From Bugula neritina (taxonomy: Eukaryota; Animalia; Bryozoa): 64,000 bases of DNA. The DNA is taken from NCBI GenBank assembly GCA_964035545.1, contig OZ037768.1:18025700-18089699 (forward strand). The letters are read 5' to 3'. Position 1 is the stretch's first letter; every line of letters starts with the position of its first letter. This document shows, piece by piece, positions 6,201 through 61,100 of this stretch. The notes beneath the pieces were generated by a model. The model was not told the origin of the DNA and searched no databases. It saw only the letters and a list, made by a program, of their open reading frames with translations. The translations under genes and the position numbers were made by a program.

Positions 6201-9200
6201 TTACTTCCCATGCCAAAACCTATTAAATGATTATGCAACCTTGTTTAATGCGTGAGTTTGGCAGGGCTTGCTGGCACCAATGGTGTATATTTTAATAGCA
6301 GTGTTCATTATTTAGCATACACTGTCTTTTCAGTAAGCAGCTGATTTTAGTTATGACATGCGTTTATGTGTAAATTGTTATTAAATGCAATTTATGTATC
6401 TTGTAGTCATTTGTAAATAATGGAACGAATTTGGCTCTAAGCTTTGCAGCAGATCCGTACAGTGAGAACTCAGATGATCGGTTGCCAACAAAAGAAACGG
6501 TAGACTTTGAAAAAGAACAAGGAAAGGTTGGTGTTTTGTCCAGTATGAGACCAATATCAAACCATGCCTCTTCCACAGGAGTGACTAGTGGGTTTTGTGT
6601 TAAACTGTTACAGAGCCAGTAGTCTGCTTGTAGCTATTAATAGATAATAGTACACCATGCCAGTACGTCCAGTTTGTAATCAACAAGTATGGCCGAGCTC
6701 TACTAATCACTTTTGGTAATATGTTCTGTTGGCATTACCTTATCCCTTGTAATAATATGACACCTTGGAGTGCAGAAGGGCAGAGGGTTTAATCATATCT
6801 GCTTTAAAGCTTAACCAAGTGCTAACATTACATGTAACTTTCCTTTGGCTGGGTATTACATAAAACATATGGCTAGATGCAAGCATGCAAGCAATGTTTT
6901 TACCAATCTGAGTTTCCAAGATTTGCCATGAGGCTAGGATTATTAGCTACCGACAGAATTTATAAGAAATCTGCTTTGTCACTCAGATATTTCCTCCTCG
7001 CAATTGCAAGGAAATTCAATGTTATCAGCTAAATTCCAACAAATGAAGCTAGTTTGACCAGAGACTGTTCGGGAAGTTTCATTTGCTGATAAGCAGTCTT
7101 TGTCAGCTGTGAAAGTATCATGCCTTAGCCTATTTTCCATTTCCATACTCTTCTTTAAGAAGTGCACATGAGTAAATAATTTCCATAGAGCAGATTAGAA
7201 GGTATTAGAATTAGTTTTAGTATGCATTATAATTATGTATTACACCATAATCAATCAATTCTAATAAGGAATCTTTGATCGGTATTGCTTATTGAAGACA
7301 GTTTATTGAACGTTCTACTATCTACTGTTGAAGCCTTTTCTCCAAGTAATTAAAACTCATCTACACCTGTTGACTCCATGTAATATTTTATTCAAAAATA
7401 ACCTAATAGTATTTATTATGTATATAATTGTTGGTTTGTGCTAAATTGAATTTATGCTGGTTTTGGCTAAGGTTAAAGAGTGCATAAATGATATGCTAAT
7501 AAAAATGTAAATATGATTGGATTGAGGCAAATGTTTTTTATTACAATTCATATAATAAAATGTGTTGCAATCCAAGTGACACATGCAAATAACCACAACT
7601 AGAGTTTTAACAGAACTTTGGTCAACTCCAAACCCATCTCGTCCTTCCTTATTAAGTCACAGTGGAAATTCAGATTCAGATTAAAAGCTGAATATAATGA
7701 GGTTCAAATAAGTTCCTCCACCTGCATGAATAGTTGAACTATATCCCTCGCTTCGCAATGAACAACTTTATTTAGATTTTAGTGTATGTAATGAAAACCA
7801 ACTGATTTATTGGGTAAAGAAATAGTTTTACTCTGCAAAAGTGCAGGAAAGGCCAAAAATTTATGGTTTAAAAGAAGTTTTAAGCTGGTGAACAATAAAA
7901 ACTAATGAACATACTTTTCAATATTCTAATTAAATTTAATGCGACTGATGATTGAGATTTATAATTAATTTGAAAATGACACCGTATATCTTGAAAAGTA
8001 AAAATGCATTTTCAATAACCTACGATGATTTAAATAAATATGCTCAATAAATTGAAGATATCTTTATCCTCTCCAGTCATGCATCGTCGGAAAAAGTTTT
8101 TTCTTAGCAAAAACCTTTTATTTTATTTGACATTGAGATGACTTGCAAGTAATTTTCTCTGTAAAATAATATTTAAAACAATATTGTTGACTATAAATCT
8201 GATTATAAACCTGGAGGTTTGCTATTTTCTTGCTCAACATTTTAAGCTGAATAAAAATTTAACAGAATCAAACGTGAGACAAGATACATTATTTGTATTT
8301 ATCTGAATAGGGTGAAGAATAAACTTTTTTCTAATTTCTCTCTCGCTTCTTAAGAGTTTTTTTAGCAATAGCAATGTAGAACCAGAACAGGAATAAATTT
8401 TAACTATTCATGTGGGACTCTAAACTACTCTTCAGTTATGTGTTATTTAATATGCGACAAAATGTGATGTAGGAGCAATGGTGATTTTTATAAAATTAAC
8501 ATATTATACATTATAAAATATTATTTGTAAAGAAAATAAAAGTCAAGAGTCCACTAATAGTGCTTAATATTAGAAAAGCAAAATGTTCATCAAATTAAAT
8601 AGAACAAGTTTAGACATCAAATATCCACGGTTTTACTCGATGCTTATGAGCTTACTTGAGGAAACAGAAATTATTTGCCATCTTCAAATATTATATTTAG
8701 TAAAGATTTATAGTATTAAGAAAATATTCTTGTTTATATAATATTCTGGCTAAACAAGTTTATATAGAAAAGTTAAAAATATTGTCTACTATTCAAGGTC
8801 GTTCAAGTGTCAACACTAAGTGTTTATATCTAGTAATTATAGCAACTTCCAGAAAAACTGAACCGACTTGGTGGTACACCATCTCACAAACATGCACCTA
8901 GTAACACCTAGTAACCGGTAGCTAAGCTCTTGAAATAGCCTAAAATGTGGTAAAAACTAACTTATTTATACCCATACCCACAAAAATATGAGACAGGATA
9001 AGATAAGTGGCAAGCCTTCTCATTGTCTTGCCATAAATGGGAAACTCATCATTTTCAACAACACCTAGTATGTCTCTCAAGAACTTTTCCTTTATCAAAC
9101 TTCCCAACTGTTTCCCAACAAAGAATAAATTAAGTGCTTTCTGAACAAAGCATCATTAAAAATGGCAAAGTTCTTATTCATACTTTGTTTGGTGGCTTAG

Positions 9201-11279
9201 AGTATGACTTTATGTTGCAGGTTCATTTGAAAGCCAGATTTATACTGAATGGTGTTTGTGTGATATGGAAAGGATGGATTGACTGTAACAGACTAGATGG
9301 CACTGGCTGCTTGGAATTTGATGAAGAAAAGTCGTTGGTGAGCAAATGGTGTCCATATACAAGTATATCTATTTATATTTTTAATATGTTTACTATGAAA
9401 TATATCTAATATATTTAATATATTAGAAATATATTATATAGCAAATGAAATATATTTAGCAAATTATTTGATCTTGAATATATAATAAATAATTAAGAAA
9501 ATAGAAATGCTGGAACTCTGTGTAATTGCTATTACGATTTTATTAGAAAATATAACAGTAGTAATTACAGATCTTTAATTCTCGTTATAATATCAATGTC
9601 TGAGAACGTTAGATATCTATGACTATTATTTATTACTCCTCCCACCCTGCTATCAGCTTATACTTTTGTGTTGGAGATTTCAAGTAAATGTAGTCTATAC
9701 TAAAACATGGAGAGTGGTTAGTAGTGATGGTAAACACTTCTATTACTGGAAAGTAGGTCACCAGTGTTATGTGCCACCAACAGAATTTACTAAACAAAAT
9801 AAATTATAATTAAATCAATTTTGTAGATGGAAGAGTCAAAGGAGAGGGAAAGGCAAGAAAAAATTGCTTTACAAATACAAGAATTTAATCAGCAGCACAG
9901 ATTATACAGTGATCAAGAGCGGCAGGCTGAGGAGTCCGAGGTATGTGTTTTACTGTCAATTAACTTTGCCTGGAAAATTTCTTCTTTTGAGTTTGAAAGT
10001 TTAGAGTGTAAAATCTGTATCGAACAAGACTCGACTCTGGATTTTTTTCTTATAAGAATTCTGTTGTAAAACTGGTTTACGAAGTTCATAAAAAATCTGG
10101 TTTTAAGCAGAAAACATACATCTGTTCTCTTGAACGCATAAAAGGTCCCAAAACATTTGATAAAAACTTTAACAACACCAAAGAGTTTATTGCTCTTTCC
10201 TCAAATGAAAATCTGTAACATCTTGGACTTCAGAGTAATTTGACTCTCTGGGACAGTGTGGTACAGCAGATTATGTGGTAACTACTAGTATGACTGGATT
10301 ACTAACTCACTCTAAGTGACAAAACAACACTGTGGTTATACACGAGACCACAGGACTTCACTTGTATTGTATATAACTAAATAAGGATAGCACTGCTTAG
10401 CAAACAGTGAAGGGGCAGTGGCAAGTAATCTGGGTAAACAGGAAGTAATTAACAGTTCCATCAGCGTTACTTGTGGTCGAGAATTAATAAAGTAGCAAAG
10501 TCAAAAATAAGATTATTTTGCCCTATATATGCATTATGTTATCACCAACTTCTTGGAAATACTGTAACTAATGTGATATTACTGTAAAATATTGCTCTGC
10601 CGTAATGTAGTAATGTAATTGCTCCACAGGGAACCTAATAGATTTGTGAAAGGTTTGTGCAAAAAAGGACATGTCACAGAATTAAAACAGGATGTCTGCT
10701 ACCAGACAATCTTAGAAGTTATTTAGAGTTAATAAAATAGCTATCAATTATGAAAAATACTTGTTTAACATCGTGTCAATTACAGGCTATTGAATGTAAA
10801 AATATCTAGAGATTTAAAATTGTAGCAAGTTGTAATAAAAGTACATCACAAAATGGAAACCACAGCTAATAAAATATTGTTGGGCCCTTTCAGGAACCAC
10901 AGAATCTGTAGAATAAATTCATTTATTAAAGGTGAATTTGATTTGAATAAATTAGTTGGAGTAAAATACTAGAAAAGAAATAACATTTGGTTGAAGATAG
11001 AGAAACTCTAAGTGTTAAAATGTGAAGTATATTTTGAGAGTTATTATCGCCAACATGCTGGCAGTTGGATAGAAAATTCATTGTACGTTGCTACTTCCAT
11101 ATGCTTTTAATAACCATTTTCAAATGTGTAAATATGAAAACAACGTTCAGAGCCAATTTGCTATGTGCTAGGTTCTATTTCTCATTCAACATGAAATTAA
11201 TAACTGAGTTGTTTGTGTTTTGCAGAATTTAAGACGAATGAGGAGAAACGGAGGTATAAAACTGGAGCAACCATTATGA
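3271..11279 (+). CDS. CBFB: Core-binding factor subunit beta (CBFB / Brother family), 6 coding exons, about 201 aa
   Basis: Exons 3271-3384, 5226-5312, 6407-6526, 9221-9337, 9827-9940, 11226-11279, all phase-0 GT-AG. Translation includes PRVCPDQRSQFENGEFFRKLTRESE|IRYTGYRDRP, GTNLAL and FILNGVCVIWKGWIDCNRLDGTGCLEFDEE, diagnostic of CBF-beta. The last exon is the least certain. Confidence 0.96.
7725..8412. mobile_element. Putative non-autonomous TIR element in CBFB intron 3
   Basis: Inverted ends catgaatagttgaactatatccct and aggaataaattttaactattcatg (20/24 match). No ORF and no clear TSD. Confidence 0.45.
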
Positions 11280-12002
11280 TTTTATAGCAAGCAGATACAG
11301 TTTATCTCACAAGATCTCACTCCATATTAGCCCAGAGTTCCTAAACTCTTTATCTAGTTAAACAACTTGTAAATCCTGGCTACAAATAGTTAAGGAAGTA
11401 GATAAAGAGTCAAGAGTTTCATAAGAAATGGTTTTTGTTGTGCTTTTATTTTGCTACAAAAGTGAAGAAAGAAAACACAACAAGGCCTTGTACGAGTGCA
11501 ATGATCCTTGGTTGTTTTCATTGCTTATTCTCATTTTTTACACTTTTGTACCAACCTTTTATTCCATGTAAATAATTATTATAAAGATAGCCAGTATGAA
11601 ATTTTTGTTTTTGAATGAAATTTTCATTCTCATTTAAAATCGAAATCAAAAGCCTGCATAATTATATAGCTGCTATGCATATATGGTGGTATTAGAGGAA
11701 ATCTAGTTGGTTATTGTGGCAATAATAATGATCACTAGTCACCATTCCTCAGTTTCCTAAGTTTTATTGGCTAGAAGCTTAATTCATGCACTAAAAGACA
11801 TCAAACGATACCAGATATTATTAGAGTTTACAATTTTTTATTATATTTTTCAACAGAATTCTGTGTATTATTCCTCAATAATGTTTTATTCAATCATTAG
11901 AAACAATTTTACAAAAATGTTGTATAAAAATAAATTATAATACAAATTAGCCACAAAGTTACCAACGACCTAGCTTTATTATAATGATTGAATAAATTTC
12001 AG

Positions 12003-15000
12003 TCAGGGCCTACAAACAGTGACTGTAACGTCACTAAATGCTTTGATAAGTAAAGATGAGACATTGGAAGCTCTTGCCAACTTGGTAAGGAACAGTTCTC
12101 CTTTGTTTCTGTTGAAATAAAAAACATATTCACCATCAAACATTGAAAAAACTGAATCTTTGAGTGTCCAAAATCAAATGTTATATAGCATAAACCAGAA
12201 AATAGATTATTAAGATTAAGTAAATTATGTGATAATTTAATTGCCTCTAGTCAAAAAGGCTTTTGATGTGGTGCAAAAGCAAAAAAGTTCTTTCCCTGTA
12301 TTGAGAGTCTTCAAAAGCATTTAAATCTGCAGTTGACATGTAGGTAATACATAATATAAGAGATTTTAATTTTGTATAAATTTCAAATAAAAGTTGTGCA
12401 ATCTCATGTGAAGAATGTGAATGTGAACAAGTGTAAAATCTGGCAGTGAATGTTTGCACCAGATACAAGCTTACAAGCTTCTCATGTCATTTGGTGCTTT
12501 AGCTTTCATAAAACAAATATTCAAGTCAATTTTAATGATGTTACAATGTCTATGTAATGTACAACAACGAAAGCATATCGGATTTTTTATAACAAAATAA
12601 TGGAAGAGGTAGCTTTTTACCCCACGTTAGATTTGAAACTTGACTTTTTAAAAACAAGGATACTATTATTTACTCATATTATTATCTATTTAGATGGTAC
12701 ACCATCTAACTAGTCTTTATACCTGCTGATGAGTTGACTGGTTTGTTCTGGAGACTGAATAAGTAGATGAATCAACATTGATAGAGAGTGATTCTCGATC
12801 ATCTTATCCGCCACTAATTCGAGGCCAGCCAGCACTTTGGGTATGATATTTATCTAATAAAGATATACAAAAGATGTACCATTCCCCCAAATACAGAATT
12901 ATTAGATATTTATCCACTACTTGTAAAGATGAGCATATTCTGGTGGCAATAAATTACTTATTGCACTGAAAATGTCAGAATCTTGTGTAACCTCAACTCA
13001 CCACAACTGCAAATCCTGGTCACAAATGGAATTTTGTTCCAATCCCAAAAAAATAAATTAATACACAATAATATAAAATACATCTTGTAGCCGGCTTAGC
13101 TGGTGGTTTTGTGTCTAAGTACTAGCATGAATATTTAATAAATTATCAACACTTAGTAAGCATGTTATGCAAAACAAAATAACAAGCGCAGCAAATGTCC
13201 ACTGTTGTTTTTTGGTAAGAGTAACAGCTATGCAAGAGCTATAAATGGAATGACAGTATTGAAATTGGAAAATGTTAATTGAATTCTGTAATACTGAAAT
13301 AGTTTTCAACCATAAACTAAACAAAGGTTGACTAAAAGATGGAATAATAAATAAGATTTTACAAGAGAAACAGGTGGATGGGATCAGATGTAGCTGTAAG
13401 GTTTATACTCATTACCCTTAAACACACAATAGAAATGAAAAATATCGATAAAATATTTAAATAAATTTAAATAATAGAACTGATTGTATGCTAAATCCAT
13501 GCAAATAATCAGCTACTAATGCAATTAAAGAAGGTTCAATGAGATTTGTAATAAATTTATCAAGAATGTTGCAATATTTTAAACATCTACAAGTGAATTG
13601 CACAATTTCTAGATGTAACTGCAAGTATAATACTTACCAGATGATGTGTATTTTGAGAATGCTGGGAGAAGTTAGACAAAGCTCTTATGACGTGTTGGTA
13701 ATACGGGGCTTTCGGATCTCCAACCAGTGGATGCAGTTGGCTTATTACCTGAGCTAGATGAGACTGAAACAAACATAAAAATGTAACAACTTTATGGGGG
13801 GGATGCAAGGTCTATAAATCATAGGTTTTAATATAATAGATTTTTGGCAATTTTATGATGCAAGGACATTTTATTTTAAATTATTTGTATTTTTGACATT
13901 TAGAGTTGTGTGGGAGTTTGAAAGATGAAACATTTTTTGATGGAATAAACTAACATTTTAGTTTGGGGTGAGAATATTTTGTACTTCTGTTTATCAGCTG
14001 ATCTGATGACATTACAATAATTATTTTTTATAAAAAGTGGTAAAGTGTACTAATAGTGTCAACATGTTTGTACTTTGTGCCTCGTGTTATGCTGCTTGAT
14101 TGACGTAAGAAATGGCACCATGCTCAGATATAGTTTGTGTAGAAAGTGTTTATCAAAAACGTGTGATGTTAACTAAGTATGTAAAAACCTTATGTAGGTT
14201 AATATAAGTACAACATTATATTACAAATAGTGTTTAAAATATTGTCATTAGTACATGATATTATAATTTATACCATAAATAGCACATATCTTAACCACAG
14301 GGTAGTTGAAAATTAATAATTTGCAGGGAAAAATTTATTGCATAAACCAACAGAATCCTAATTATTCATGAGTGATGAGTAATCAATGTAATCAAAACTC
14401 TAGGCCAGTTCTAATATGAATTGTAAAATGCAGATATTATGTTGAAGGAGAAGGCATCCAATGAACAGCCTATAGTTACAATTATAAATGCTGATTATTT
14501 TCCATGCTTAGTTTTTAATCTTAGAATGATTATTATTTGAACCATCTATATGATAGTTGGATAGAAGCTGGTAGTTTAGTAAAACCTGCAATGATTTTTA
14601 TAGTAAACTCCACGGAGAGCTTATTGCTTATACAAAATTGCTAGCTTCTCATATGACAGTACACTAACAAAAAGCATTTATCATATATATGCATTCCATT
14701 GCTATATTATTCTTATTTTACATCAACGTTTTGTGAGATTTAAACACAAAGAAGAGCAAAAACAACAAACAACAACACCTCAACTATTGCTTTCCTATGC
14801 ACTATAATTATAAAGTGGCACTCAACTTGAATCTGTTGCAATTTTCCTTCATTTTCATTACTTTGAAAGCAGGGAGAGCCACAAGTTGGTTAAAAATATA
14901 ACAACACACTTGACTGCACTCCACAAAACATGAGAAATAGAAATGAACTGTTTGCCTCTCACTTCATGTAGCTCATACTGTAAGCTTATACAAGCATAAC

Positions 15001-18000
15001 TCTCACATCAGTTCATATAGGGTAAAGGCCTTTAGAAACTAATTATTAAAATGTTATTTAATATGCAGGTTTACAATGATTTGAAAGCAATGTTTATATT
15101 TATATAACAAAATATTCTTACGTGACTTAACTTTATGATTAATAGTAATTTTAGTTGATAATTTGTTTGTTTGTTATAACTAAAAATACACTCTGCAGGT
15201 AAGCATACTAGAGATGATAGAATATTTCTCTGGTAAAGTTTTGTTGAATTAAGTTTAACTCGGTTGAATTAAGTTTAACTCGGTTGAATTAAGTTTAACT
15301 TGGTTGAGTTAAGTTTAACTTGGTTGAATTAAGTTTAACTTGGTTGAATTAAGTTTAACTTGGTTGAATTAAGTTTAACTTGGTTGAATTAAGTTTAACT
15401 TGGTTGAATTAAGTTTAACTTGGTTGAGTTAAGTCGGGAAATATTATGCTTAAGCCTATCCCATAATATTCTCATTATATCACAAGATGCAACTTTTTTA
15501 ACACACCTAAATTCAATATTGCATTTTCCAGCTTTACAAAACCACTTTCTATCCAGATAAAAGGTAGAAAGTAGTATTGATAAACTAAAGCCTCGAAATT
15601 GTGAAGAGGAAAGGCTAACTGGGGAACCAATCCAGCTCTCCTGCTATAATCATGACTTAATCATTACAGCTGCAACCATAATACCAAACATGCTGAGAAT
15701 AGCTAATAATAAAACTAAGTGGTTGATGATGTGTGACGATAGCTGTTTGTTCGGCATATTGTTGTAGTTATATTTGATTTTACATAACTATGGGGAAGTA
15801 ACTACTAATTAAACTGTTGGTGTCAGAAAAAGTTCACATAGTAAAATCCTCTTGTATCATTTATATGCATTAATATAAGACATTAACTATTCAAAAGTTG
15901 TTCCCGGTAGCGAATCATCAAACTTATATGTCTTAGAGTGCATTTGACCTGCCAATAACCAAGACTATGTGTGACCCATGGCCAGGTATCTCTTAGCACA
16001 AGCTGTGTTTTGTCTACTTGTCTACTAGTAATGATATCATGGCTTGAAACAAACAACCTTTATCTATATATGCTACTCTATTTTGGCAGGAATAGTTTGC
16101 AGAATCAAAGTTCTTTAATTGTTAAGTGAATCACCTATTCTATGCAAAACAGTCTCGATACAAAGACCTGCACACAGTATGAGCCAAATGGCCTGCATCA
16201 GCTGTTTGCCCAATCAAGAAAAATAAAGCGCAAGAACAACAAACATCATTACACATGTACATGTAGTATAGTTTAAGAAAGTAATAACACAGTGCTGACT
16301 GAATGCTGCTGATAAATTCCATACCAAAGTTCACCAGTGACAACCATGGCTATATATCTTTTCAATAAACAAAACATAACAACTAGAGCAGATCTTTTAA
16401 TTTTAAACCAATTGATTAATAATGAAATAAACAGAAATATTGCTTCATCAAAGTATATTGGCCTATATAATCAACACGTAGTCAAACCAGCAGAAGGTTT
16501 ACACACCTCTCAGCTAACCTATAATCATTAATCAAACTGTTATTTCCATGAATCAGAAGAGTTTGATATATGCATTTCCCTGCAGAAGATACTAGTAAAG
16601 TATAAATTCCAACAGACTTTGAAATATGTGTTTTTAAATGCATTAGTAATCTGAATAACATACTAACTTAGTGTTAGTATGCAAATTGGACAAAGACAAC
16701 ATATGATCTTTTTGATAAGCAAGTTTGCTGAAAAGTTTTTGATAGAGCAATTCCTTCCTATAACTAAGTGAGTTAATTTTAGTTACATCACTTTGATTTA
16801 ATGGACAATGAGTGAATTTTTAATAGTTGAGTCATGGTACAGAAAGAGATTTTTTAGTAACTTTATTAGATTGTGTGATAGCATGAGATTCAACAGATAG
16901 AACTATAAGCTGTGAGTACCTGAGTATCTGGAGCAAAGGCTAGATTTGCAACTAGACAAGTTACGTTGGTTAGCAGCTCATTGCTATTCTCCTTTTTCAA
17001 AGATTTACTTATATACGATGAAGTTGCCTCCACCTGAAACAATTGGCTTTGTGTCATCGTGATTGATTAGAGTAATATTGACGTAGCAGATTAGTCGTAT
17101 TATACTATGGCATTTCCTGGAGGGAGGTGCAGTAATGGAGAGATTGAGAAAAGCCTGTGTTCTAGATTACAAATGTAGCAAAAAAAGTTATATTCGCGAA
17201 AGAATTTCAACCTGAGCCCCAAACCAAAATTAATAAAAATATTAATGAACTTAGACTATCTCAATTTCTCCACTACTGCTCCTAATTAGAGGTAGGTGCA
17301 GTAATGGAGAGATTGAGCAAAGCCTGTGTTCTAGATTACAAATGTAGCAAAAGAAGTTATATTCTCGAAAGAATTTCAACCTGAGCCCCAAACCAAAATT
17401 ACTAAAAATATTAATGAACTTAGACTATCTCAATTTCTCCACTACTGCTCCTAATTACTCAAAACTCATATACAATAAATTTTACCTATCACTCTTCAGT
17501 ACTAGAGTATATAGAATAAATGTTTTCTGTACATGTTCTCAAAGCATTTGACAGAGTAAACAGCTTAAAGAGAGCAGTAATTTGCATATTTATCCAAATA
17601 GTTTAACATATGCCATGCATACAAATCTAATCAATAACTTAGAGCTAGGCTGTTGCAAACAAAGCTATGCATCACAGATACATCTTGGTAATTAAAATAC
17701 AAAACACCTTTATTTGAAACTTAGATAATATTTCTAAAACTTTATAAAGTTCTATAAAGAATACCATTTGTTTGAGTTATAATAATGTATTTACTATACA
17801 ATGACACATTTTAATAGCATTTATCCAAGTGCTGAGCAAGCTTTTCCAAAGAGCATACCAAAATCTTTACGTTTAGAGTTATTGACATCTGAGTACATCG
17901 AGATATGATTGCTATTGTTTATTACAATGTCAACGGCTACAATAAAAAACTAGAAAAAATATATATACTTCAATATTAGAAATAGTGCAGTTCAATTACT

Positions 18001-21000
18001 GCTTTCATTATTAAACTTGAACTATTAAAATCCATCAAGAAATGTAATTTATTTCAACCCATCTGCAATTTTTGTTTTTCATGATATATACAATTGAAGA
18101 GATGGCTAATTACTAATAATTTCCTCATAGCATTCGTAATTATTCTAAGGATTAACTGTTACTTTTCCCATATAAACTGTTTCTCAAGTCTAATTTGATT
18201 TGGTAGTAAAATGTAGGACTATTATACTATGACTAATGAAATACTGCATATTAGGAAGAGATCACAACTCCTAAAGCAAACAAATAATTAGAGCAACCAG
18301 ATTATTAGTTTACCTCAGATAAAGCTGTAGTATAAGCTGGGGTTTGTGTAGCTGAAATCTCTGCAAGAATTTTAAATACCAGTGTTGAAACCTGCAGAAT
18401 AACTTTCATGATTAGTTTTTAATAAAAATTACATATTGTCTTTCAACTTGATACGAAAATCAATTTGACCTAATTACAAGTAAATAATTCAGCTTAATAG
18501 ATGAACAACATTATAATGTTGTTACTGAATAAATGCTTTACTACACTAGAAGAAATACCTGAGCATCCTGAGATAGTGTTACTAATGATATAATGTATTT
18601 GACTGTCTGTGTGTTTGACATAATCTGAGAGTGAGCCTGAGGTATACCACAGGTCCTCATTATAGTTTCTAAAGCTAATAGTCTGGTCAGTTCATCGACC
18701 CGGTGTATAATCATAAGAAGAGAAGACAACCCTCCACCTGACACAACTGGAACATGGAATAACACCAACTGGTAATAATGTGCAATAGGAAATCACAAAG
18801 ATAAACACACAGATGCCACATTTATAGAATAAGAACTGATAAAGATGCATCTAATTTATATCAGGATGCTTGATAATATGTTCTGGTTTAAACTTGGTGC
18901 TCTATTTTAAAAGTCAAAATTTTTTTCATTCTTGAACTTTGATATTGCTATCACTCATAAAATAATCACATTTAATTGCGTTCCATTAGAAACAAATAAA
19001 AATATTAACCTGCAAATTAATAAAATGGTGTAGAAACTAGAAAGTGCATAATCAAAACAAAACACAATAGCCTTTATATAATAGTGTGGAAGAGAGATTA
19101 GTGAATTTAGAGTTATCTTACCCTGATGAGCCCCTTCTTTGTTACTTAATACCAGTAAAGTACTGATACAATCTGATATCACTTTCTCTGAGCTCTCAAA
19201 ACTCTGCATTATACTAAAATGTGAAACATATATATGTTTTATTGCATTAATCCTACATCTCACAATGACTATGAACTCAAATTAAGGTTTCCATGTTGGA
19301 CATTCAACAGTTTGTTTTTCAATTGGCACAGACTTATTAAATTAAAATAAATTACATACTCTTAATGTCTAAAATAATCGTTCTAAATGTAGATCTATTA
19401 CAGTGCTCCCTCTGTATCTTATAGTTCCCCGTTCTCACAAAATTCCAAAGTCACGAGACAGACTTGGACCCCGTTTTGTAACTTATATATGAGTGTATAG
19501 GGAAAAACGAACAAATTTAACAGATCCATAAGTTAAAACTGTTATTCTACTATGTCACGAATTGAGGTTTCAGGACCTGTAGCTTAGTGAAATACGGAGG
19601 GAGCACTGTATTTACAAGTTGGCAATAAAAGATGCATATGTACGTTTAACAGAAAAAAACACTAGAGACTCCAAGTTACTTACTTAGAAAGAGCTTGTAC
19701 AGCCCCAGCATCTAGCAAGTATTTCTGTAGACTAACTTGTGTTGACAGTATGTGTAGGGCAGGTACAGCGTACCGGTGTACTTGGCTGCTGTTAGTACCA
19801 CATAGCCACACTAGTGTGTGCAGTCCTCCCATTTCTATCAACTATGATGATAATTCAACTCAACAGCAAAGTACACTGATTATTCAAAGTTACTTTTTAG
19901 TAACAATTATCATGTAATTGATGGTAAGACTGAATAGTGACTCAGATTTGTCTCTCAAGAAAATTTCAAGTGTTTTACTAACTTTTGACCTTATTTTTTC
20001 AATGTGACCATGTACTACTTTAGTGATTCTCCATACCAGTTTGATCGCTTATCAAGACATGCAACTATGTATACTACCTGTATACCGCCTATAGTATACT
20101 ACCTATGGTATACAATCACGCATACTATCTGTTTTAATTTTGTTGAGTTCATTTATTAGCTGATAAAAGTATATAGAATACTCGATTTTTTCTATAGCCA
20201 TTATAACTATTTGAACTGGCAAAAATAAAGGGAATAAACCGAACCTCTTGCATACATTTTCTTGCTTGAATGAGCTCTAAAAATCCTGCAGCTGCTTCAC
20301 TTTTTAACTTCTAAAATTTCAAGAATTTAAGTTTAAAATATGTTTGTAAACAACAACTACTTATGTTGATAAGCCAATAGTTGCATAATCAGATTCTCGG
20401 CCAACAAATTTTAAAATATCTTTCAAACAAAAGTACATACTACAATAGTTATATAATTATGCATATATGTTTAGTAAATGACTTGGGTAAAATAACTGAA
20501 AGTCTAAATAATTTGAAACTGCAGATAGATTTAGTTTTTATCAGTTATTTAAAATGTATACTTTGTTTCTAAACAAGTTTATAAAAAAGTTGGAGTAAAA
20601 TTTTGAAAATTCCTTCAATTTCAAAAAGTAAACCTATATATACAGTTTCAAAGTTTAGTTTGCACAAACAGTGTGAAAGGAAACAACTAACAGTTGCAGA
20701 TTTCCATATTCTTTATCATATACTGTACTAAAATACAGCTTACAGTGTCAGCTGTAAGAGCCTTCGACATTAAAGGAAGTACTGGCTTGCAAATTGCACA
20801 AATTCTTTCTAAGTCAGTCATACCCAAGTGTGTTAACACCATCTACAAAATTATATTATTGACATTTTATTATAACATACTTTATGTTAGTACTATGTTA
20901 GTAGACCAAAGTTATAGTGCAGTAATTATAACTATCATTTAAAATAATTTATTAGCAGATAATATTGCATTACAATGTAGCAAGTATGTGGCAATGTATC

Positions 21001-21717
21001 ACAGTCTACAATGCTTGGTGCAACTTAAAAAGAATAAAAAATGAAACATTAAAAAGTTATTTGCTATAGTGCAGCAACATGCATAGATATTCATCACAAA
21101 ATAGCATTTCAGAACTATTTATAATATGCAAAGTTAGTTCAGTATGAAAGATGCTGTGAAAATTTTACAGTTGAATTTTATATGATGATACATATTATTT
21201 TTATTGTCAGTAACAACAGGCCAATGTTTTACCATTAATAATAACTAAATTAAAATTCAAATACTTTGTCATTGCAGCACTTGCTGCAAAAGAGTCTGCC
21301 ACAGGATCTACAATGATGTTTTCGTCGAATTTGAGTGAATTTATTTTTGCAGTACAAGCACTGAGATGCCCCAGAATCCTCTGTCCATCTGTAATAACCA
21401 ACAAATGGTTTTAATATTTTTCAAGTTCTCTACTTACTATTTTGTAAAAAAACCGTATAGATCAATCATAGTCATTAATATACATTGAATTATAATCATG
21501 AGTGAAAGCTTGGAGTGCTGAAAATCTTCTGCCAAGAATCTTGTGACACATGTTTCATGCATGTATCAGTATGGTGTGCAAAAATGACTAAAAACTGACA
21601 ATAAACTTACTTGGGTCGAATAAATTCAAGTCTTGGTTTGTTGAAGACACAGAGCTCACCTTGTGGAACAGCTACTATAACTCTCTCGCCAGACTCTAGA
21701 AGAATTGACCCTTCCAT
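12003..21717 (-). CDS. Uncharacterised FYVE-finger + armadillo-repeat protein, 12 coding exons, about 462 aa
   Basis: Exons (high to low) 21717-21611, 21388-21265, 20842-20744, 20310-20245, 19841-19684, 19213-19122, 18746-18559, 18391-18314, 17033-16920, 13763-13638, 12853-12723, 12108-12003. All are GT-AG and phase-consistent (1389 nt), with an in-frame stop upstream of the ATG. FYVE signature WTED...CLYC...[10 protein letters not shown]...CSKC...RICAIC, followed by ARM-like repeats ([14 protein letters not shown]...ALHILS; [14 protein letters not shown]; [14 protein letters not shown]; [13 protein letters not shown]; VIRALSNFS). Confidence 0.88.
15241..15434. repeat. 20-bp minisatellite (GGTTGAATTAAGTTTAACTT), about 9.7 copies
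   Basis: Nearly identical head-to-tail units with no spacers, in intron 9 of the FYVE-ARM gene. Confidence 0.97.
17126..17451. mobile_element. Head-to-tail dimer of a ~157-bp MITE (17126-17282 and 17295-17451)
   Basis: Each unit starts ggtgcagtaatggagagattgag and ends ctcaatttctccactactgctcc (imperfect TIRs). Period 169 bp. A related copy lies at 25945-26083. Confidence 0.85.
19401..19608. mobile_element. Tc1/mariner-(pogo)-type MITE
   Basis: TA|cagtgctccctc...ggagggagcactg|TA: CAGT termini, TA flanks, and a diverged second copy at 24053-24246. Confidence 0.85.
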
Positions 21718-22798
21718 TATGAGCAACTTTTACTGTCAAACTCAGTAAGCTTTCATCGACAAAGTTTATATCCCATTATTACGTGCAACTTTTTAGCAGT
21801 GTTGGTTTACTAACTTCTATTAACTAACTCTTTTATAGTCAGTAAAGTGAAACTTCATGCGCTGTGTTATCTGTGTTGTGAATTAATTATCAACAGATTA
21901 TGAAAATTCAATTGCCACAACAATCAGCATGAGCTTTGACTCAACTGACACACCCCCTCCTAAATGTCAAGGCCACCACTAAGCCGTGCAACGAGAGGAA
22001 ATAACTCTATACCGTAATAACCAAACCCACTGTGATATCGTCTAATAATTATACTTGCAAGTTGTACACAATATTTCAGTGGCTATGTCCTAGGACATTA
22101 CGCAGCAATTCTAAATAAATTTAAAAAGACATTACCAGTGTAGTTACTTAAAGTTTAAGTTATTTTCACTGATTCAGTTATTTAACCAGTTTTCTGTATT
22201 ATTCGAAAATATATCCATTTCTTCAACAGTTGTATAAAATTATTTATAGTGCCTATAATCAAATACATTATTTATTAGTTAACTTTATCAAGGACACTTT
22301 AGCAGCTATACTATGGTATACATTAGCTCTACCATTTGTAGGAACTCATTTTCAACTGAGCCAAGACGAGACTCAACACAATTATTACAGCACATTTTTA
22401 TTTTTAGCTATGTCAAGCTACAGTACAGAAAAGTAAACTTTATTGTGTATGAAAATGCTGTCACATTTAGGGCTAGTACAATTAATTGTACCTTTAGATT
22501 AAAAAATTTACAAAAAAAAACAGTTTTGTAGGAGACCTGTAAGCTAGCAAAAAATAACAAATAAGTCATCAACAAAAATCCTATGCTATGCTATAAAGGA
22601 TCTGATTAATGTACAAAGCAAAGCCATTTGAGGTAAATAGGAAAGTAGAAAATCATTAGCAGATTTCATCAAATTTTCTTGCCAGCATTTATCATATAAC
22701 CATTGAGGGTATTATGAAAATATTAAAGTGCATGATGGACAAGTCATTGAAATAGAAAATGAATAATAATACATCATCGAATGAGTTAGCAAAATGAT

Positions 22799-33421
<10,623 letters not shown>

Positions 33422-33869
33422 GTTTATTTGTTATTCTAAAACAGAATGAAGCAAAACTTTGCTTACAGACACTTTGCTTTTAATAATAGCTGATTATAGA
33501 CCTACAGTGACTTGGAATTGGTCCGAATCTACAATCACTCAATGAAGACGATTTCATTTAATATTATTAATAAGTTAGTTATACTAATTACTATTAAATA
33601 AATAAAATAACAAATAATTATAAGCATAATAATAATAATTACTACTTAGTATAGGTATTAGTATTACTATTAGTATAACTCAATTTGATCGCTTGTGAAT
33701 AACATCAACTAAATCTTTGTCATAATCATAGCGTTATTGTTGGACATTCACATTGTCATTGTCGTTATAATTATAATTATTATTACGATAAATGATAACA
33801 TTAAATGCCACTGTAATACTAATAGTTTTGATACTGAAAGACTCAAACTCAAAGTGAATGTTATGTTGG

Positions 33870-57303: not shown

Positions 57304-58131
57304 TACAAACAACAATTGTTGCGGATACCATTAGAATTAACAGATATTACTTTTGTTATCTGTATCTCCTCCCTCTATCTTCACAACTAAATTCAGTCAA
57401 CAAATTTATTGCTTATTTATTTGCTTATGCTTTTCGTGGTTATAGATGGTATATTTTTTACTAAATGAGAAGTAATACAACTGGTATGGCCTTGCCACAT
57501 ATAGTTGTACTGATGCATTTATGAATTATATAATATTTTGTTGTCATATGCAGCTAATACAAAATAATATTTAAAATGATATTTTTTTTTTTATTTGTTG
57601 GTAAAGGTGACCATTGATAGAATTTAACACATCATGAGGTTATAATTATATTAGAAAAAATGTTTTCTATCAAAATTAACAAAAATACAGTAAATATAAA
57701 ATACTAAGAAATACAAGATTTAGTTTTTACATAGGATTGTGCTTTGTGAATTAGTTGCTGAGCTAATAATGGGCATCATATTTTCCAATTGTACTCTGTA
57801 CACAAAAAACACAAAAAGTTATTTTCCATATAAGAACTGACAATAAACCGATAGACAATAAGTATCAACAACAAAAATATAGCATGCAAGATATAAATAT
57901 AGTAAATGCCCCACAAATATATGAATAAAAAATAAGCATTTGAGGTCCCAAATGTTAATTTTCTATAACAAAAGTGCAGCAAGTTGTAAAAATAACACAA
58001 CTTGCGATGTGGCATTTAAATTTGATGTCTTGAGGTTACATAAAAAGTAGATTGTATATATTCACACATCACATTATCAAATAAAGAAATAAGTGTAATA
58101 AATTTAAACCTGATAACATAACGGCAATTGG

Positions 58132-61100
58132 TTACTTGGCGCCAGGAACTTGGTGCAACACCTACAAACAGTCAAATTGCATAACATTGTAACGTATTCA
58201 GCAGTGGAGATCTTATCTTAGGAGGATTACTTGGTATTCCAAGCATCAAATCCAATAAATTTAAGCAATATACTAAGCAAATTAAATTAATAACAAGTGC
58301 TCTAAAGTTAAAAAAGAACTTTGTGATATTTGGAAAAGCATTAACAACAAAATTAGTATTCATCAAAACACAGTCTGGTGAATGATGATACAATGTACTC
58401 GTATTTATTTACCTTGGATAAGTCGACACCAGTGAGTGCCTGTACAGCAGGGGGCAGTTGACTGACCAGTTTTGATACTTCACTAGTTGTTCTGTCATCA
58501 CCTACCATAACAATCTCATCAACTCTAGCAAGAGGGGCGGACACTTCGGCAGCAATCTGTAATAATATACACACCATGCAGTAATATACACATCATGTAG
58601 TTAGACTACTAGCACTCTCAAGCTATAATGTAAATCTACTACAAAGTTTATACCGTAATTCTGCACAGGACTAAAACAGTATAATATATTCAGGGTAAAG
58701 TGTACATGATGTCACACACTAAAGTAAAAGATAATTTTAAAGTTGGAGAGAAACAAAAAAAGGACATTAAAAATAAAAAGGTACTTTAGAATGTAGAGAT
58801 CATTTAAAGTATTTCCCATGTAATAAGGTGACTCTAGAAAAATAGAGCTATTGCACAATAATTTCTGACAACTTTCAAAGTAAACAATGCAATGAAAAAA
58901 TTGTTATCTCATTAATCATAAACTTGATAATAAACAAAATATTAAAACAATGTCTCAAAGTTGTCAACTAACAAGAGAAAAAACACTCTAAAGATAGAGA
59001 AGATCATACACAGAATGGGCCTTGCGTAGCCATAGTGTAACCTGGGAACTTACCTTTGGTAAAGTCTCCAGAATAAGGCTGACCATAGCTGCGTCTCCAT
59101 ACTGCTTATAGGCGGAAGCTTTCAGTCTCATTCTCTCGGCTTCTGCTTTACCAACAGCTTCTATAGCCGTAGCCTCAGCTTCACCAGTCAGTCTGATCTG
59201 CTCAGCGTTAGCTTTGGCTGCCTCAACTTTCTGTATTCTGTAAAGAAATGTATCACATGATATAGATATAATATAATAAGTAGTATTCAGTTATTAAACC
59301 TCCAACTAATAATACATCATACTTGACATTTATCAATAGTCAATACTTTACATGACTAAAATAAGAAATGATCAAAAGCGTCAAATACAAGTGAAATAGA
59401 TGTTACAATGCAATGCAAACATTTCATGAAATAATTTGAGTTGTTACAAGAAATCAGCAGAAATGTAAAATGAAAGTAAAAATCTGCAAACTACATGAAA
59501 GCATTATAATAAAAAGAGTTACTGTAAGAATTACAGCATTTTATTTAAATAAACTGGAGTGCGAGTGACAAAGAACAGTGTTGGGGAATTTTTCACCTTT
59601 TGCCATCAGCAATCTGGTTGACTCTGTAGGCTTCAGCCTCTGCAGGTAACTTGATGGTAGCGTGCAGCTCGTTCTCCTTCCTCACAATCTCCTTGTCCTC
59701 TACACTGATTTGTTTTCTTCTCTCCACTACATCTATCTCGATCTCTTCAGCTCGAATCTTTTGATTTGTTTTGGCTGCTTGCAGCTCATAGGCCAACTCA
59801 GCTTCAGCATTCTGCATGTAATAATATACATGTATATGTAATATACATATAATAATATTACAGATATTAATACTACATATAGCAAATACTACATATAGCA
59901 ACAACAAACATTAGAATCGAAATGAAATTTGGTGAAAAGACAGTAATTTATTCACTTAAATCGTTATTTATAAGTTGAAAAGGTAATAATTATTATAGCA
60001 TTTATTATTCAAGTTCAAAGATTTTTAATTTCATGATTTTTGGAGGTGTTTAAAATCTTGCTGAGTAGTTGAATGTTCATATGGATAGTCTGACTTAAGC
60101 TCATACACACAACTGTATATATCAGTGCAGGTATAAAACAATACTGTTGCTTAGCAACGCATCATTCACCTTTGCATTGACCTCCTGGTCGAACTGGGCT
60201 TGCATCATCTGGTAGCCTCTGTTTGAATCAGCAACTCTTGAGTCTGCCTCGTATTTAGTGTCCATCATAGTTTTCTCACACTCAGCCTCCTGGAAACACA
60301 TACAAGATAAATAAGATGACTTGCATACCCAGAAGGGCGTTTCATAATAGAAAATTATGGTGAAAAGACAAATCCTGAAGTGAGCAACTCTTAAATCAAG
60401 TGTTTAATGTATGTAACATGCTGAAATATTAAACTGAAATGACTTTTAGAGAAACATAAATGCATTTTATAAAAATATGTATTGTATACAGATTCAATAA
60501 GAAACTGTTAGTTATATTATAATGTACAACATGTTAACTTCTAGAACTTCAAGAATCAATAACTAAAGTCTTTTTAATTATCAATAATTAAAGGAATTTC
60601 AGATTTGTTTGTTTGCAACACAGTTGTAAACTGTTGGTAATTTTATCAATAAAAAATAACTACTACGGCTTTAATGGCTTCAGTCACAATGTTAAACTAT
60701 AAAACGAAACTTGAAATCAAAAACTGCAATAAGAAATTGTCAGTCATATCATATTACATAATACGTTAATGTTCGTATTTACCTGAATTCCAGCATCTCT
60801 GTTAGCCTCAGCAACACCAATATCAGCATCTCTCTTTACGATGGCGGTTTGGGCACGCCCTAAAGAGGCGAGGTAGTCAACCTTGTCATAGACATCTTTG
60901 ATGGTGAAGGAAACAATCTCAATGCCCATACGGCTGACATCAGGAGAGGCTACTTTACGAACTTCCTGTGCAAACTTATCTCTATCTTGAAACACTTCTT
61001 CCACAGTGAGGGTTCCTTAAAAATACAGAAGTTTGGTTCAAAGATTATGAAAACTTATCATACACAAATGAGAAAAATAATTCAAATGCCTGCATTACAG

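Follow-up and report, generated by a model that had tools for sequence, protein, structure and literature searches.

The window analysed here is a stretch of 64,000 nucleotides (nt) of contig OZ037768.1 from the bryozoan Bugula neritina, whose genome is AT-rich (~31% guanine plus cytosine). From 21717 down to 12003, its minus strand carries a gene of 12 exons that encodes a FYVE zinc finger followed by a solenoid of armadillo (ARM) repeats, hereafter the FYVE-ARM gene. According to the splice-site reading, all introns are of the GT-AG type and their phases are consistent. The coding length is 1389 nt (462 codons plus stop), beginning with the ATG at 21717, which is preceded by an in-frame stop 4 codons upstream, and ending with a stop codon at 12005-12003. 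tblastn of P0003, a 467-residue protein of Watersipora subatra, yields 12 collinear matches in the window that cover the same interval, 21717-12003. Thus, the 12-exon, phase-consistent model of ~462 residues put forward in the original prediction proved exact in coordinates, exon count and length, as judged by tblastn collinearity and splice sites. Read from stop to stop, the minus strand at this locus shows a row of short open stretches. The gene spans 9.7 kilobases (kb), and its ARM exons occur once in the 216-megabase (Mb) assembly. The FYVE-ARM gene is a single-copy, intact and transcribed bryozoan gene. Its exons are as follows; X1, X2 and X3 are the sequencing runs described below the list.

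Exon 1, 21611..21717, minus strand: start codon and a 35-residue N-terminal peptide; contiguous with exon 2 in RNA contigs.
Exon 2, 21265..21388, minus strand: N-terminal two-thirds of the FYVE finger, cysteines 1-6; Pfam FYVE E=3e-14; contig piece 21265-21388 in X1 and X3.
Exon 3, 20744..20842, minus strand: C-terminal third of the FYVE finger (RIC, cysteines 7-8) and linker; tblastn match to P0003 79-109, GT-AG borders and phase; joint at 20744 implied by RNA contigs.
Exon 4, 20245..20310, minus strand: helical cap ahead of the first ARM repeat; joint 19841 to 20245 in X1, X2 and X3.
Exon 5, 19684..19841, minus strand: ARM repeat 1, the most canonical; Pfam Arm E=8.5e-4; RNA piece 19690-19841.
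Exon 6, 19122..19213, minus strand: ARM repeat 2; joint 19213 to 19690 in X1, X2 and X3; borders from tblastn and splice sites.
Exon 7, 18559..18746, minus strand: ARM repeat 3 and part of repeat 4; RNA piece 18557-18746.
Exon 8, 18314..18391, minus strand: remainder of ARM repeat 4, 78 nt, equal to a 78-nt gap in the spliced contig; borders from tblastn and splice sites.
Exon 9, 16920..17033, minus strand: ARM repeat 5 (helix 3 CLVANLA); RNA piece 16920-17031; borders from tblastn and splice sites.
Exon 10, 13638..13763, minus strand: ARM repeat 6 (helix 3 RALSNFS); tblastn match to P0003 343-389, GT-AG borders and phase; outside the read comparison.
Exon 11, 12723..12853, minus strand: ARM repeat 7; from tblastn and splice sites; outside the read comparison.
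Exon 12, 12003..12108, minus strand: C-terminal cap helices and stop codon; from tblastn and splice sites; outside the read comparison.

The first line of evidence for a composite gene comes from public sequencing runs, which were compared with the window over 15750-21749. Three of them (X1, X2 and X3) are labelled RNA-Seq or guessed to be RNA, X1 and X2 being designated 'symbiont metagenome'; the fourth, X4, is DNA. Since spliced contigs of three runs (X3 record 18, 1593 nt; X1 record 6; X2 record 13) join FYVE exons to ARM exons, the two parts belong to one transcript; separate transcripts for the FYVE and ARM exons, a possibility raised in the original prediction, were not what the contigs showed. 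Exons 1, 2, 5, 7 and 9 are placed together by these contigs, and the gaps in the records match exons 3, 4, 6 and 8. Thus, X3 record 18 is placed on 21611-21742, 21265-21388, 19690-19841, 18557-18746 and 16920-17031, and its unplaced stretches of 165, 98 and 78 nt equal exons 3 plus 4, exon 6 (together with six letters from exon 5 that have diverged) and exon 8, respectively. Both 19841 to 20245 and 19213 to 19690 occur as joints in each of X1, X2 and X3, and the DNA run X4 has none of these splice joints over the same stretch. Because the joints are absent from X4 and the ARM exons have no second copy in the assembly, the spliced contigs are messenger RNA (mRNA), and a processed retrocopy was rejected as their source.

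The junctions, which the original prediction had left to RNA sequencing, are thereby confirmed for exons 1-9 in three runs, whereas those of exons 10-12 lie beyond the compared stretch. The assignment of exons 10-12 draws on collinearity with P0003, on splice sites and on the length of the contig tail: the part of X3 record 18 located 3' of exon 9 measures 399 nt against 363 nt predicted for these exons, which would fit the three exons plus a short untranslated region. Between the runs and the window, sequence divergence is ~4-6% in introns and ~2% in exons, and the two six-letter diverged stretches that are readable in the runs are both synonymous; this pattern suggests that the runs derive from a different strain or from a cryptic species and that the coding sequence is under constraint. 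It should be noted that intron contigs without splicing, differing from the window by 4-6%, also occur in X1-X3 within 15750-21749; the three runs are therefore taken to include pre-mRNA or genomic DNA from a strain or cryptic species of the same animal other than that of the window.

The second line of evidence is conservation among bryozoans, which, like the gene structure, the transcript and the domains, is established. Database searches with the window protein were performed exon by exon, with P0003 serving as the full-length proxy. An exhaustive HMMER search with exon 7 against 1.84 billion representatives returned five matches, namely one near-identical fragment, three exon-sized fragments and P0003 itself. 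The latter is annotated in NCBI/UniRef as a 467-residue 'uncharacterized protein' of the cheilostome bryozoan Watersipora subatra; the Bugula exon translations are collinear with it over the full length and 55.7% identical overall (458 residues). Identity is 91% in exon 1 (the N-terminal peptide), 80% and 61% in FYVE exons 2 and 3, 68% and 65% in exons 4 and 5 (cap and ARM repeat 1), 45-53% in exons 6-10 (the middle ARM repeats), and 35% and 29% in the C-terminal exons 11 and 12. The Watersipora gene has the same 12-exon structure and the same intron positions, although it comes from a different bryozoan family, spans 27 kb rather than 9.7 kb, and has RTC in place of RIC in the finger; its product, too, is uncharacterised. 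The FYVE-ARM gene has a CBF-beta gene as its tail-to-tail neighbour (window 9134-11291, plus strand; Pfam CBF_beta E=6.5e-17), and the same convergent arrangement is found at the Watersipora locus (L011). Because the intron positions and the tail-to-tail neighbour are both shared, P0003 is an ortholog with conserved microsynteny. The fragment matches come from short contigs, and three further contig sets carry exons of this gene: L003 contains exons 3-7 in order, including an RVC motif, and L001 contains exons 6-9. At least three further taxa, presumably bryozoans, thus have the gene. Neither the exon-wise searches nor those with P0003 turned up a characterised ortholog, in agreement with the original prediction. 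As a side observation, L011 repeats at 8898-8993, ~1 kb upstream of the Watersipora start codon, the latter half of exon 5 (residues 153-184) with 100% identity; this extra copy is either a stray duplicate of the exon or an artefact of assembly.

The FYVE finger is complete and canonical, as had been predicted. Exon 2 alone scores 53.3 bits against Pfam FYVE (PF01363; cutoff 27.8, E=3e-14) and aligns to the endofin FYVE structure 3t7l (E=1.4e-11), while P0003 scores 59.9 bits (E=2.6e-16) over profile positions 1-62 of 67. Exons 2 and 3 of the window encode eight zinc-binding cysteines arranged in four CxxC pairs (CLYC, CRSC, CSKC and CAIC) and the three motifs WTED, RRKHHCR and RIC; the corresponding motifs of P0003 are WTDD, RRKHHCR and RTC, and L003, which covers only this end of the finger, has RVC. 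Thus, the arginine of the third motif is invariant, whereas its middle residue varies. In the FYVE structures of EEA1, Hrs and Vps27, the residues that contact phosphatidylinositol 3-phosphate (PI3P) are those of the WxxD, R(R/K)HHCR and RVC motifs, and these three motifs are usually missing from FYVE variants without PI3P binding. The best PDB matches to the finger by sequence are endofin, Hrs, Vps27, ZFYVE28 and EEA1. With such canonical effectors (endofin/ZFYVE16, Hrs, Vps27, EEA1, ZFYVE28) the finger can be aligned throughout, and all PI3P-contact motifs are held in common; however, none of them has an ARM solenoid, and the Bugula protein lacks the coiled coil, VHS, PH, WD40 or other partner domain of the canonical FYVE families.

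The ARM part begins with exon 4 and, counted by eye, comprises about seven repeats of 40-45 residues followed by a C-terminal cap; overall it is put at about 7-8 repeats in ~350 residues. The solenoid postulated in the original prediction is therefore present, the count by eye of about 7 repeats and a cap comparing with the 6-7 proposed. Exon borders roughly follow repeat borders. Exon 5 scores 19.7 bits against Pfam Arm (PF00514; E=8.5e-4), slightly below the cutoff of 20.6, and P0003 scores 17.3 bits against the same cutoff. In a phmmer search of the PDB, the ARM part matched designed consensus ARM proteins (E=2.3e-7, in 3-4 stretches), Vac8 (1e-3), ARMC4 (7e-3) and importin-alpha (0.4). The ESM Atlas model of P0003 has a predicted template modelling score (pTM) of 0.80 and a predicted local distance difference test score (pLDDT) of 0.83; its ARM part, ~340 residues, gives template modelling (TM) scores of 0.78-0.79 to Vac8 clusters and 0.79-0.83 to beta-catenin/plakoglobin. 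Thus, rather than the lack of an ARM/HEAT solenoid, which had been named as evidence that would speak against the prediction, the modelled ortholog displays a right-handed superhelix of three-helix repeats. Judging by P0003 and the contig fragments, the best conserved parts of the repeats are the helix-3 segments, e.g., TDCISTLL, CL[LV]ANLA and RAL.NFS, as would be expected of a conserved binding groove. When the window exons were aligned to P0003 by MAFFT as separate rows, most ARM exons were set on wrong repeats, and this alignment was not used.

The N-terminal 35-residue peptide (window 21613-21717, minus strand) is the most conserved part of the protein, being 91% identical to Watersipora as compared with 80% for the FYVE core. 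It has no relative in Pfam, in the PDB, or in the protein database as covered by a word-indexed search with residues 1-57 of P0003; a match to GroES with E=0.6 was dismissed as chance. Two short beta strands are predicted in it with low confidence. Possible roles of the peptide are an extension of the FYVE fold, the binding of a partner, and occupation of the ARM groove. No lipid anchor is evident from reading the Bugula sequence, which has neither Gly2 nor a CAAX box.

Beyond bryozoans, the distribution of the architecture was approached in several ways. Word-indexed searches with P0003 whole, with its ARM part (residues 105-467) and with residues 1-57 gave, among the matches listed, P0003 and FYVE-only proteins such as FGD2, such searches, which rely on a word index and are capped at 8000 candidates, being weak on distant kin. 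The nearest ESM Atlas neighbour of P0003 is a cluster of 61 members, mostly from Mollusca, with a length of 472 residues and the automatic name 'Armadillo/beta-catenin-like repeat/FYVE zinc finger domain-containing'; FYVE is present in 100% of its members and Arm in 77%. The cluster shares with P0003 a feature score of 0.98 (234/256 features) and TM scores of 0.88 and 0.87 over 444 residues. When the ARM part of P0003 is used alone, the same cluster ranks first (TM 0.86), above Vac8 and beta-catenin/plakoglobin. Length and architecture are thus held in common (472 vs 467 residues), the comparison being one of features and models rather than of aligned sequences, and the molluscan proteins are likewise uncharacterised. 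Members of the cluster were not returned by the word-indexed searches or by the single-exon HMMER search, which we read as divergence too great for these methods. In our opinion, the family probably extends to molluscs, a good lead that is as yet unconfirmed. No chordate or arthropod FYVE+ARM cluster was found among the Atlas neighbours of P0003, and because both phyla are heavily sampled, this weakly suggests that the family is absent from them; the loss from standard model organisms put forward in the original prediction is a conjecture.

The claim that no FYVE+ARM architecture was known did not hold. The Watersipora ortholog is annotated in NCBI, the molluscan cluster carries both domains in its automatic name, and a protein of this kind has been studied in Giardia lamblia. 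GlFYVE (GL50803_16653) has 990 residues, with FYVE in a 300-residue N-terminal part that also includes a disordered region, and ARM repeats at 301-990 (PMC7058353). It is found at endocytic peripheral vacuoles and binds clathrin heavy chain and dynamin, and its ectopic expression, as the full-length protein or as either half, lowers fluid-phase uptake (PMC7058353). Although the order of the domains is the same as in the Bugula protein, GlFYVE is about twice as long and belongs to a distant protist, and the comparison is one of architecture alone; FYVE and ARM were likely joined independently in the two lineages. For an animal FYVE+ARM protein, literature searches found no paper. As a combination of two textbook domains, the FYVE-ARM protein is lineage-restricted and uncharacterised, and databases already contain it.

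Lipid binding, membrane location, groove binding and pathway are inferred. We propose, with a probability of roughly 60%, that the FYVE-ARM protein is a PI3P-dependent adaptor or scaffold of endosomes or lysosomes. Through the FYVE finger the protein would dock on PI3P-rich membranes, whether endosomal, lysosomal or autophagic, and the concave ARM groove would then hold extended peptides of one or more partner proteins. Since one FYVE finger by itself anchors weakly, membrane recognition by FYVE and partner binding by ARM would together amount to coincidence detection. The Giardia precedent favours such a role, since GlFYVE combines the same two domains at endocytic compartments with clathrin, and its location is ARM-dependent (PMC7058353).

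On autophagic membranes and endosomes, PI3P is read mainly by FYVE proteins, whose known families each pair the finger with a different effector module. A compact FYVE+ARM protein that is conserved in one animal phylum and probably in a second, and that has no evident counterpart among the large chordate or arthropod clusters encountered, would be a further pairing of this kind and a simple test case for cooperation between a lone FYVE finger and a peptide-binding solenoid. Nothing is overturned by this, since the two domains are textbook cases, databases already hold the protein as a prediction, and Giardia offers a studied precedent. The practical value lies in a well-defined, expression-supported candidate for work on membrane traffic in lophotrochozoans.

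Several observations weigh against an endosomal PI3P adaptor. A lone FYVE finger without a dimerising coiled coil is usually weak on membranes, and PI3P alone may not suffice to hold it there. The turret-loop residues ahead of RRKHHCR are F-T-Q-I, which is partly hydrophobic at most. The evidence for the fold is the Atlas model of the Watersipora ortholog rather than a model of the Bugula protein itself, and a single-sequence AlphaFold2 model of P0003 was poor (pLDDT 46, pTM 0.37), with an ARM part that is all-helical at low confidence. Finally, when GlFYVE was divided, the ARM half kept its normal location, whereas the half containing FYVE lost it (PMC7058353).

The behaviour of the GlFYVE halves also lends itself to another explanation, namely that the finger is not a PI3P anchor at all and has some other role (another lipid, a protein, or a structural function), with the ARM domain or the N-terminal peptide setting the location. 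The better conservation of the N-terminal peptide relative to the finger (91% vs 80% and 61%) would be in line with this. Yet the three PI3P-contact motifs and the eight cysteines are intact in both the window and Watersipora, L003 keeps the RVC end, and it is these motifs that FYVE variants without PI3P binding usually lack; we therefore regard a finger that does not read PI3P as unlikely, while granting it a modest share of the probability.

A bolder extension of the adaptor reading, which we offer as a long shot, is that the protein might be a counterpart of Vac8 restricted to bryozoans and molluscs, i.e., a PI3P-tethered ARM hub for contact sites or autophagy, in which the N-terminal peptide would lie in the ARM groove as an autoinhibitory segment and be released on membrane binding. 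The importin-beta-binding (IBB) domain of importin-alpha folds back into the ARM groove as an autoinhibitory ligand in this manner.

Vac8 of Saccharomyces cerevisiae (PDB 5xjg, 6kbn, 7ycj) is itself an ARM solenoid held at a lysosome-like organelle by an N-terminal membrane anchor, and the Bugula protein could in principle be its divergent true ortholog, with the FYVE finger replacing N-terminal acylation. Among natural ARM proteins of the PDB, Vac8 is the best match by sequence (E=1e-3 when the query is restricted to the ARM part, E=3e-6 when it also takes in the end of the FYVE finger), and Vac8 clusters stand directly behind the molluscan cluster in the Atlas structure list. However, consensus ARM designs match far better (2e-7 vs 1e-3), so the similarity is to ARM repeats in general, and the TM scores of beta-catenin/plakoglobin are equal or higher (0.83 vs 0.78). 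The anchor of Vac8 consists of myristate and palmitate, attached to a protein of 12 repeats and about 500-580 residues, whereas the Bugula protein has a FYVE finger and about 7-8 repeats; it starts M-E-G-S-I-L-L, with no N-terminal cysteine, and thus lacks the SH4-type acylation motif of Gly2 and nearby cysteines. Membership in the Vac8 family was rejected on these grounds, and true orthology is, in our view, quite improbable. The 'Vac8-like' label of the original prediction remains apt in so far as it describes an architecture in which an ARM hub is joined to an anchor, and fails as a statement of kinship.

Just as doubtful, in our estimate, is the idea that the ARM part resembles SmgGDS (RAP1GDS1) and acts as a chaperone or exchange factor for small GTPases, recruited to PI3P membranes by the finger. 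When the ARM part is compared by itself on language-model features, several RAP1GDS1 clusters come closest to it (score 0.92), but it shares with them only 152-164 of 256 features, under the 170 typical of the same family and on a measure that is uncalibrated for protein parts; moreover, RAP1GDS1 is not among the structure matches or the PDB sequence matches. The least probable alternative, a gene model artefact consisting of two misjoined neighbouring genes or a pseudogene, has a single point in its favour, that the model was put together by eye, and is ruled out by a single spliced contig covering exons 1-9 and beyond in three runs, a frame that is open throughout, and a full-length collinear Watersipora ortholog with identical intron positions.

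Two introns of the FYVE-ARM gene contain repeats. Intron 8 holds, at window 17120-17457, two tandem copies of a 169-nt unit that are 97% identical. In each of the four runs the contig depth summed over this unit is in the tens of thousands, which marks it as a dispersed repeat of this genome with a very high copy number; the open frames within it are due to chance. Another high-copy repeat is situated in intron 5 (window 19350-19750), where depth is in the hundreds to thousands in all runs but X3, compared with ~30-150 alongside.

Two further genes were recognised in the window. A multi-exon MCM helicase gene occupies about 23270-33430 on the minus strand, ~1.5 kb upstream of the FYVE-ARM start, with matches to MCM_OB (E=3e-21), the MCM P-loop domain (7e-12) and MCM_lid (2e-26); its Ser/Pro-rich N-terminal exon suggests MCM4. 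At about 58000-61100, also on the minus strand, a Band_7/SPFH exon (E=1.3e-10) with adjacent coiled-coil exons looks like part of a flotillin gene.

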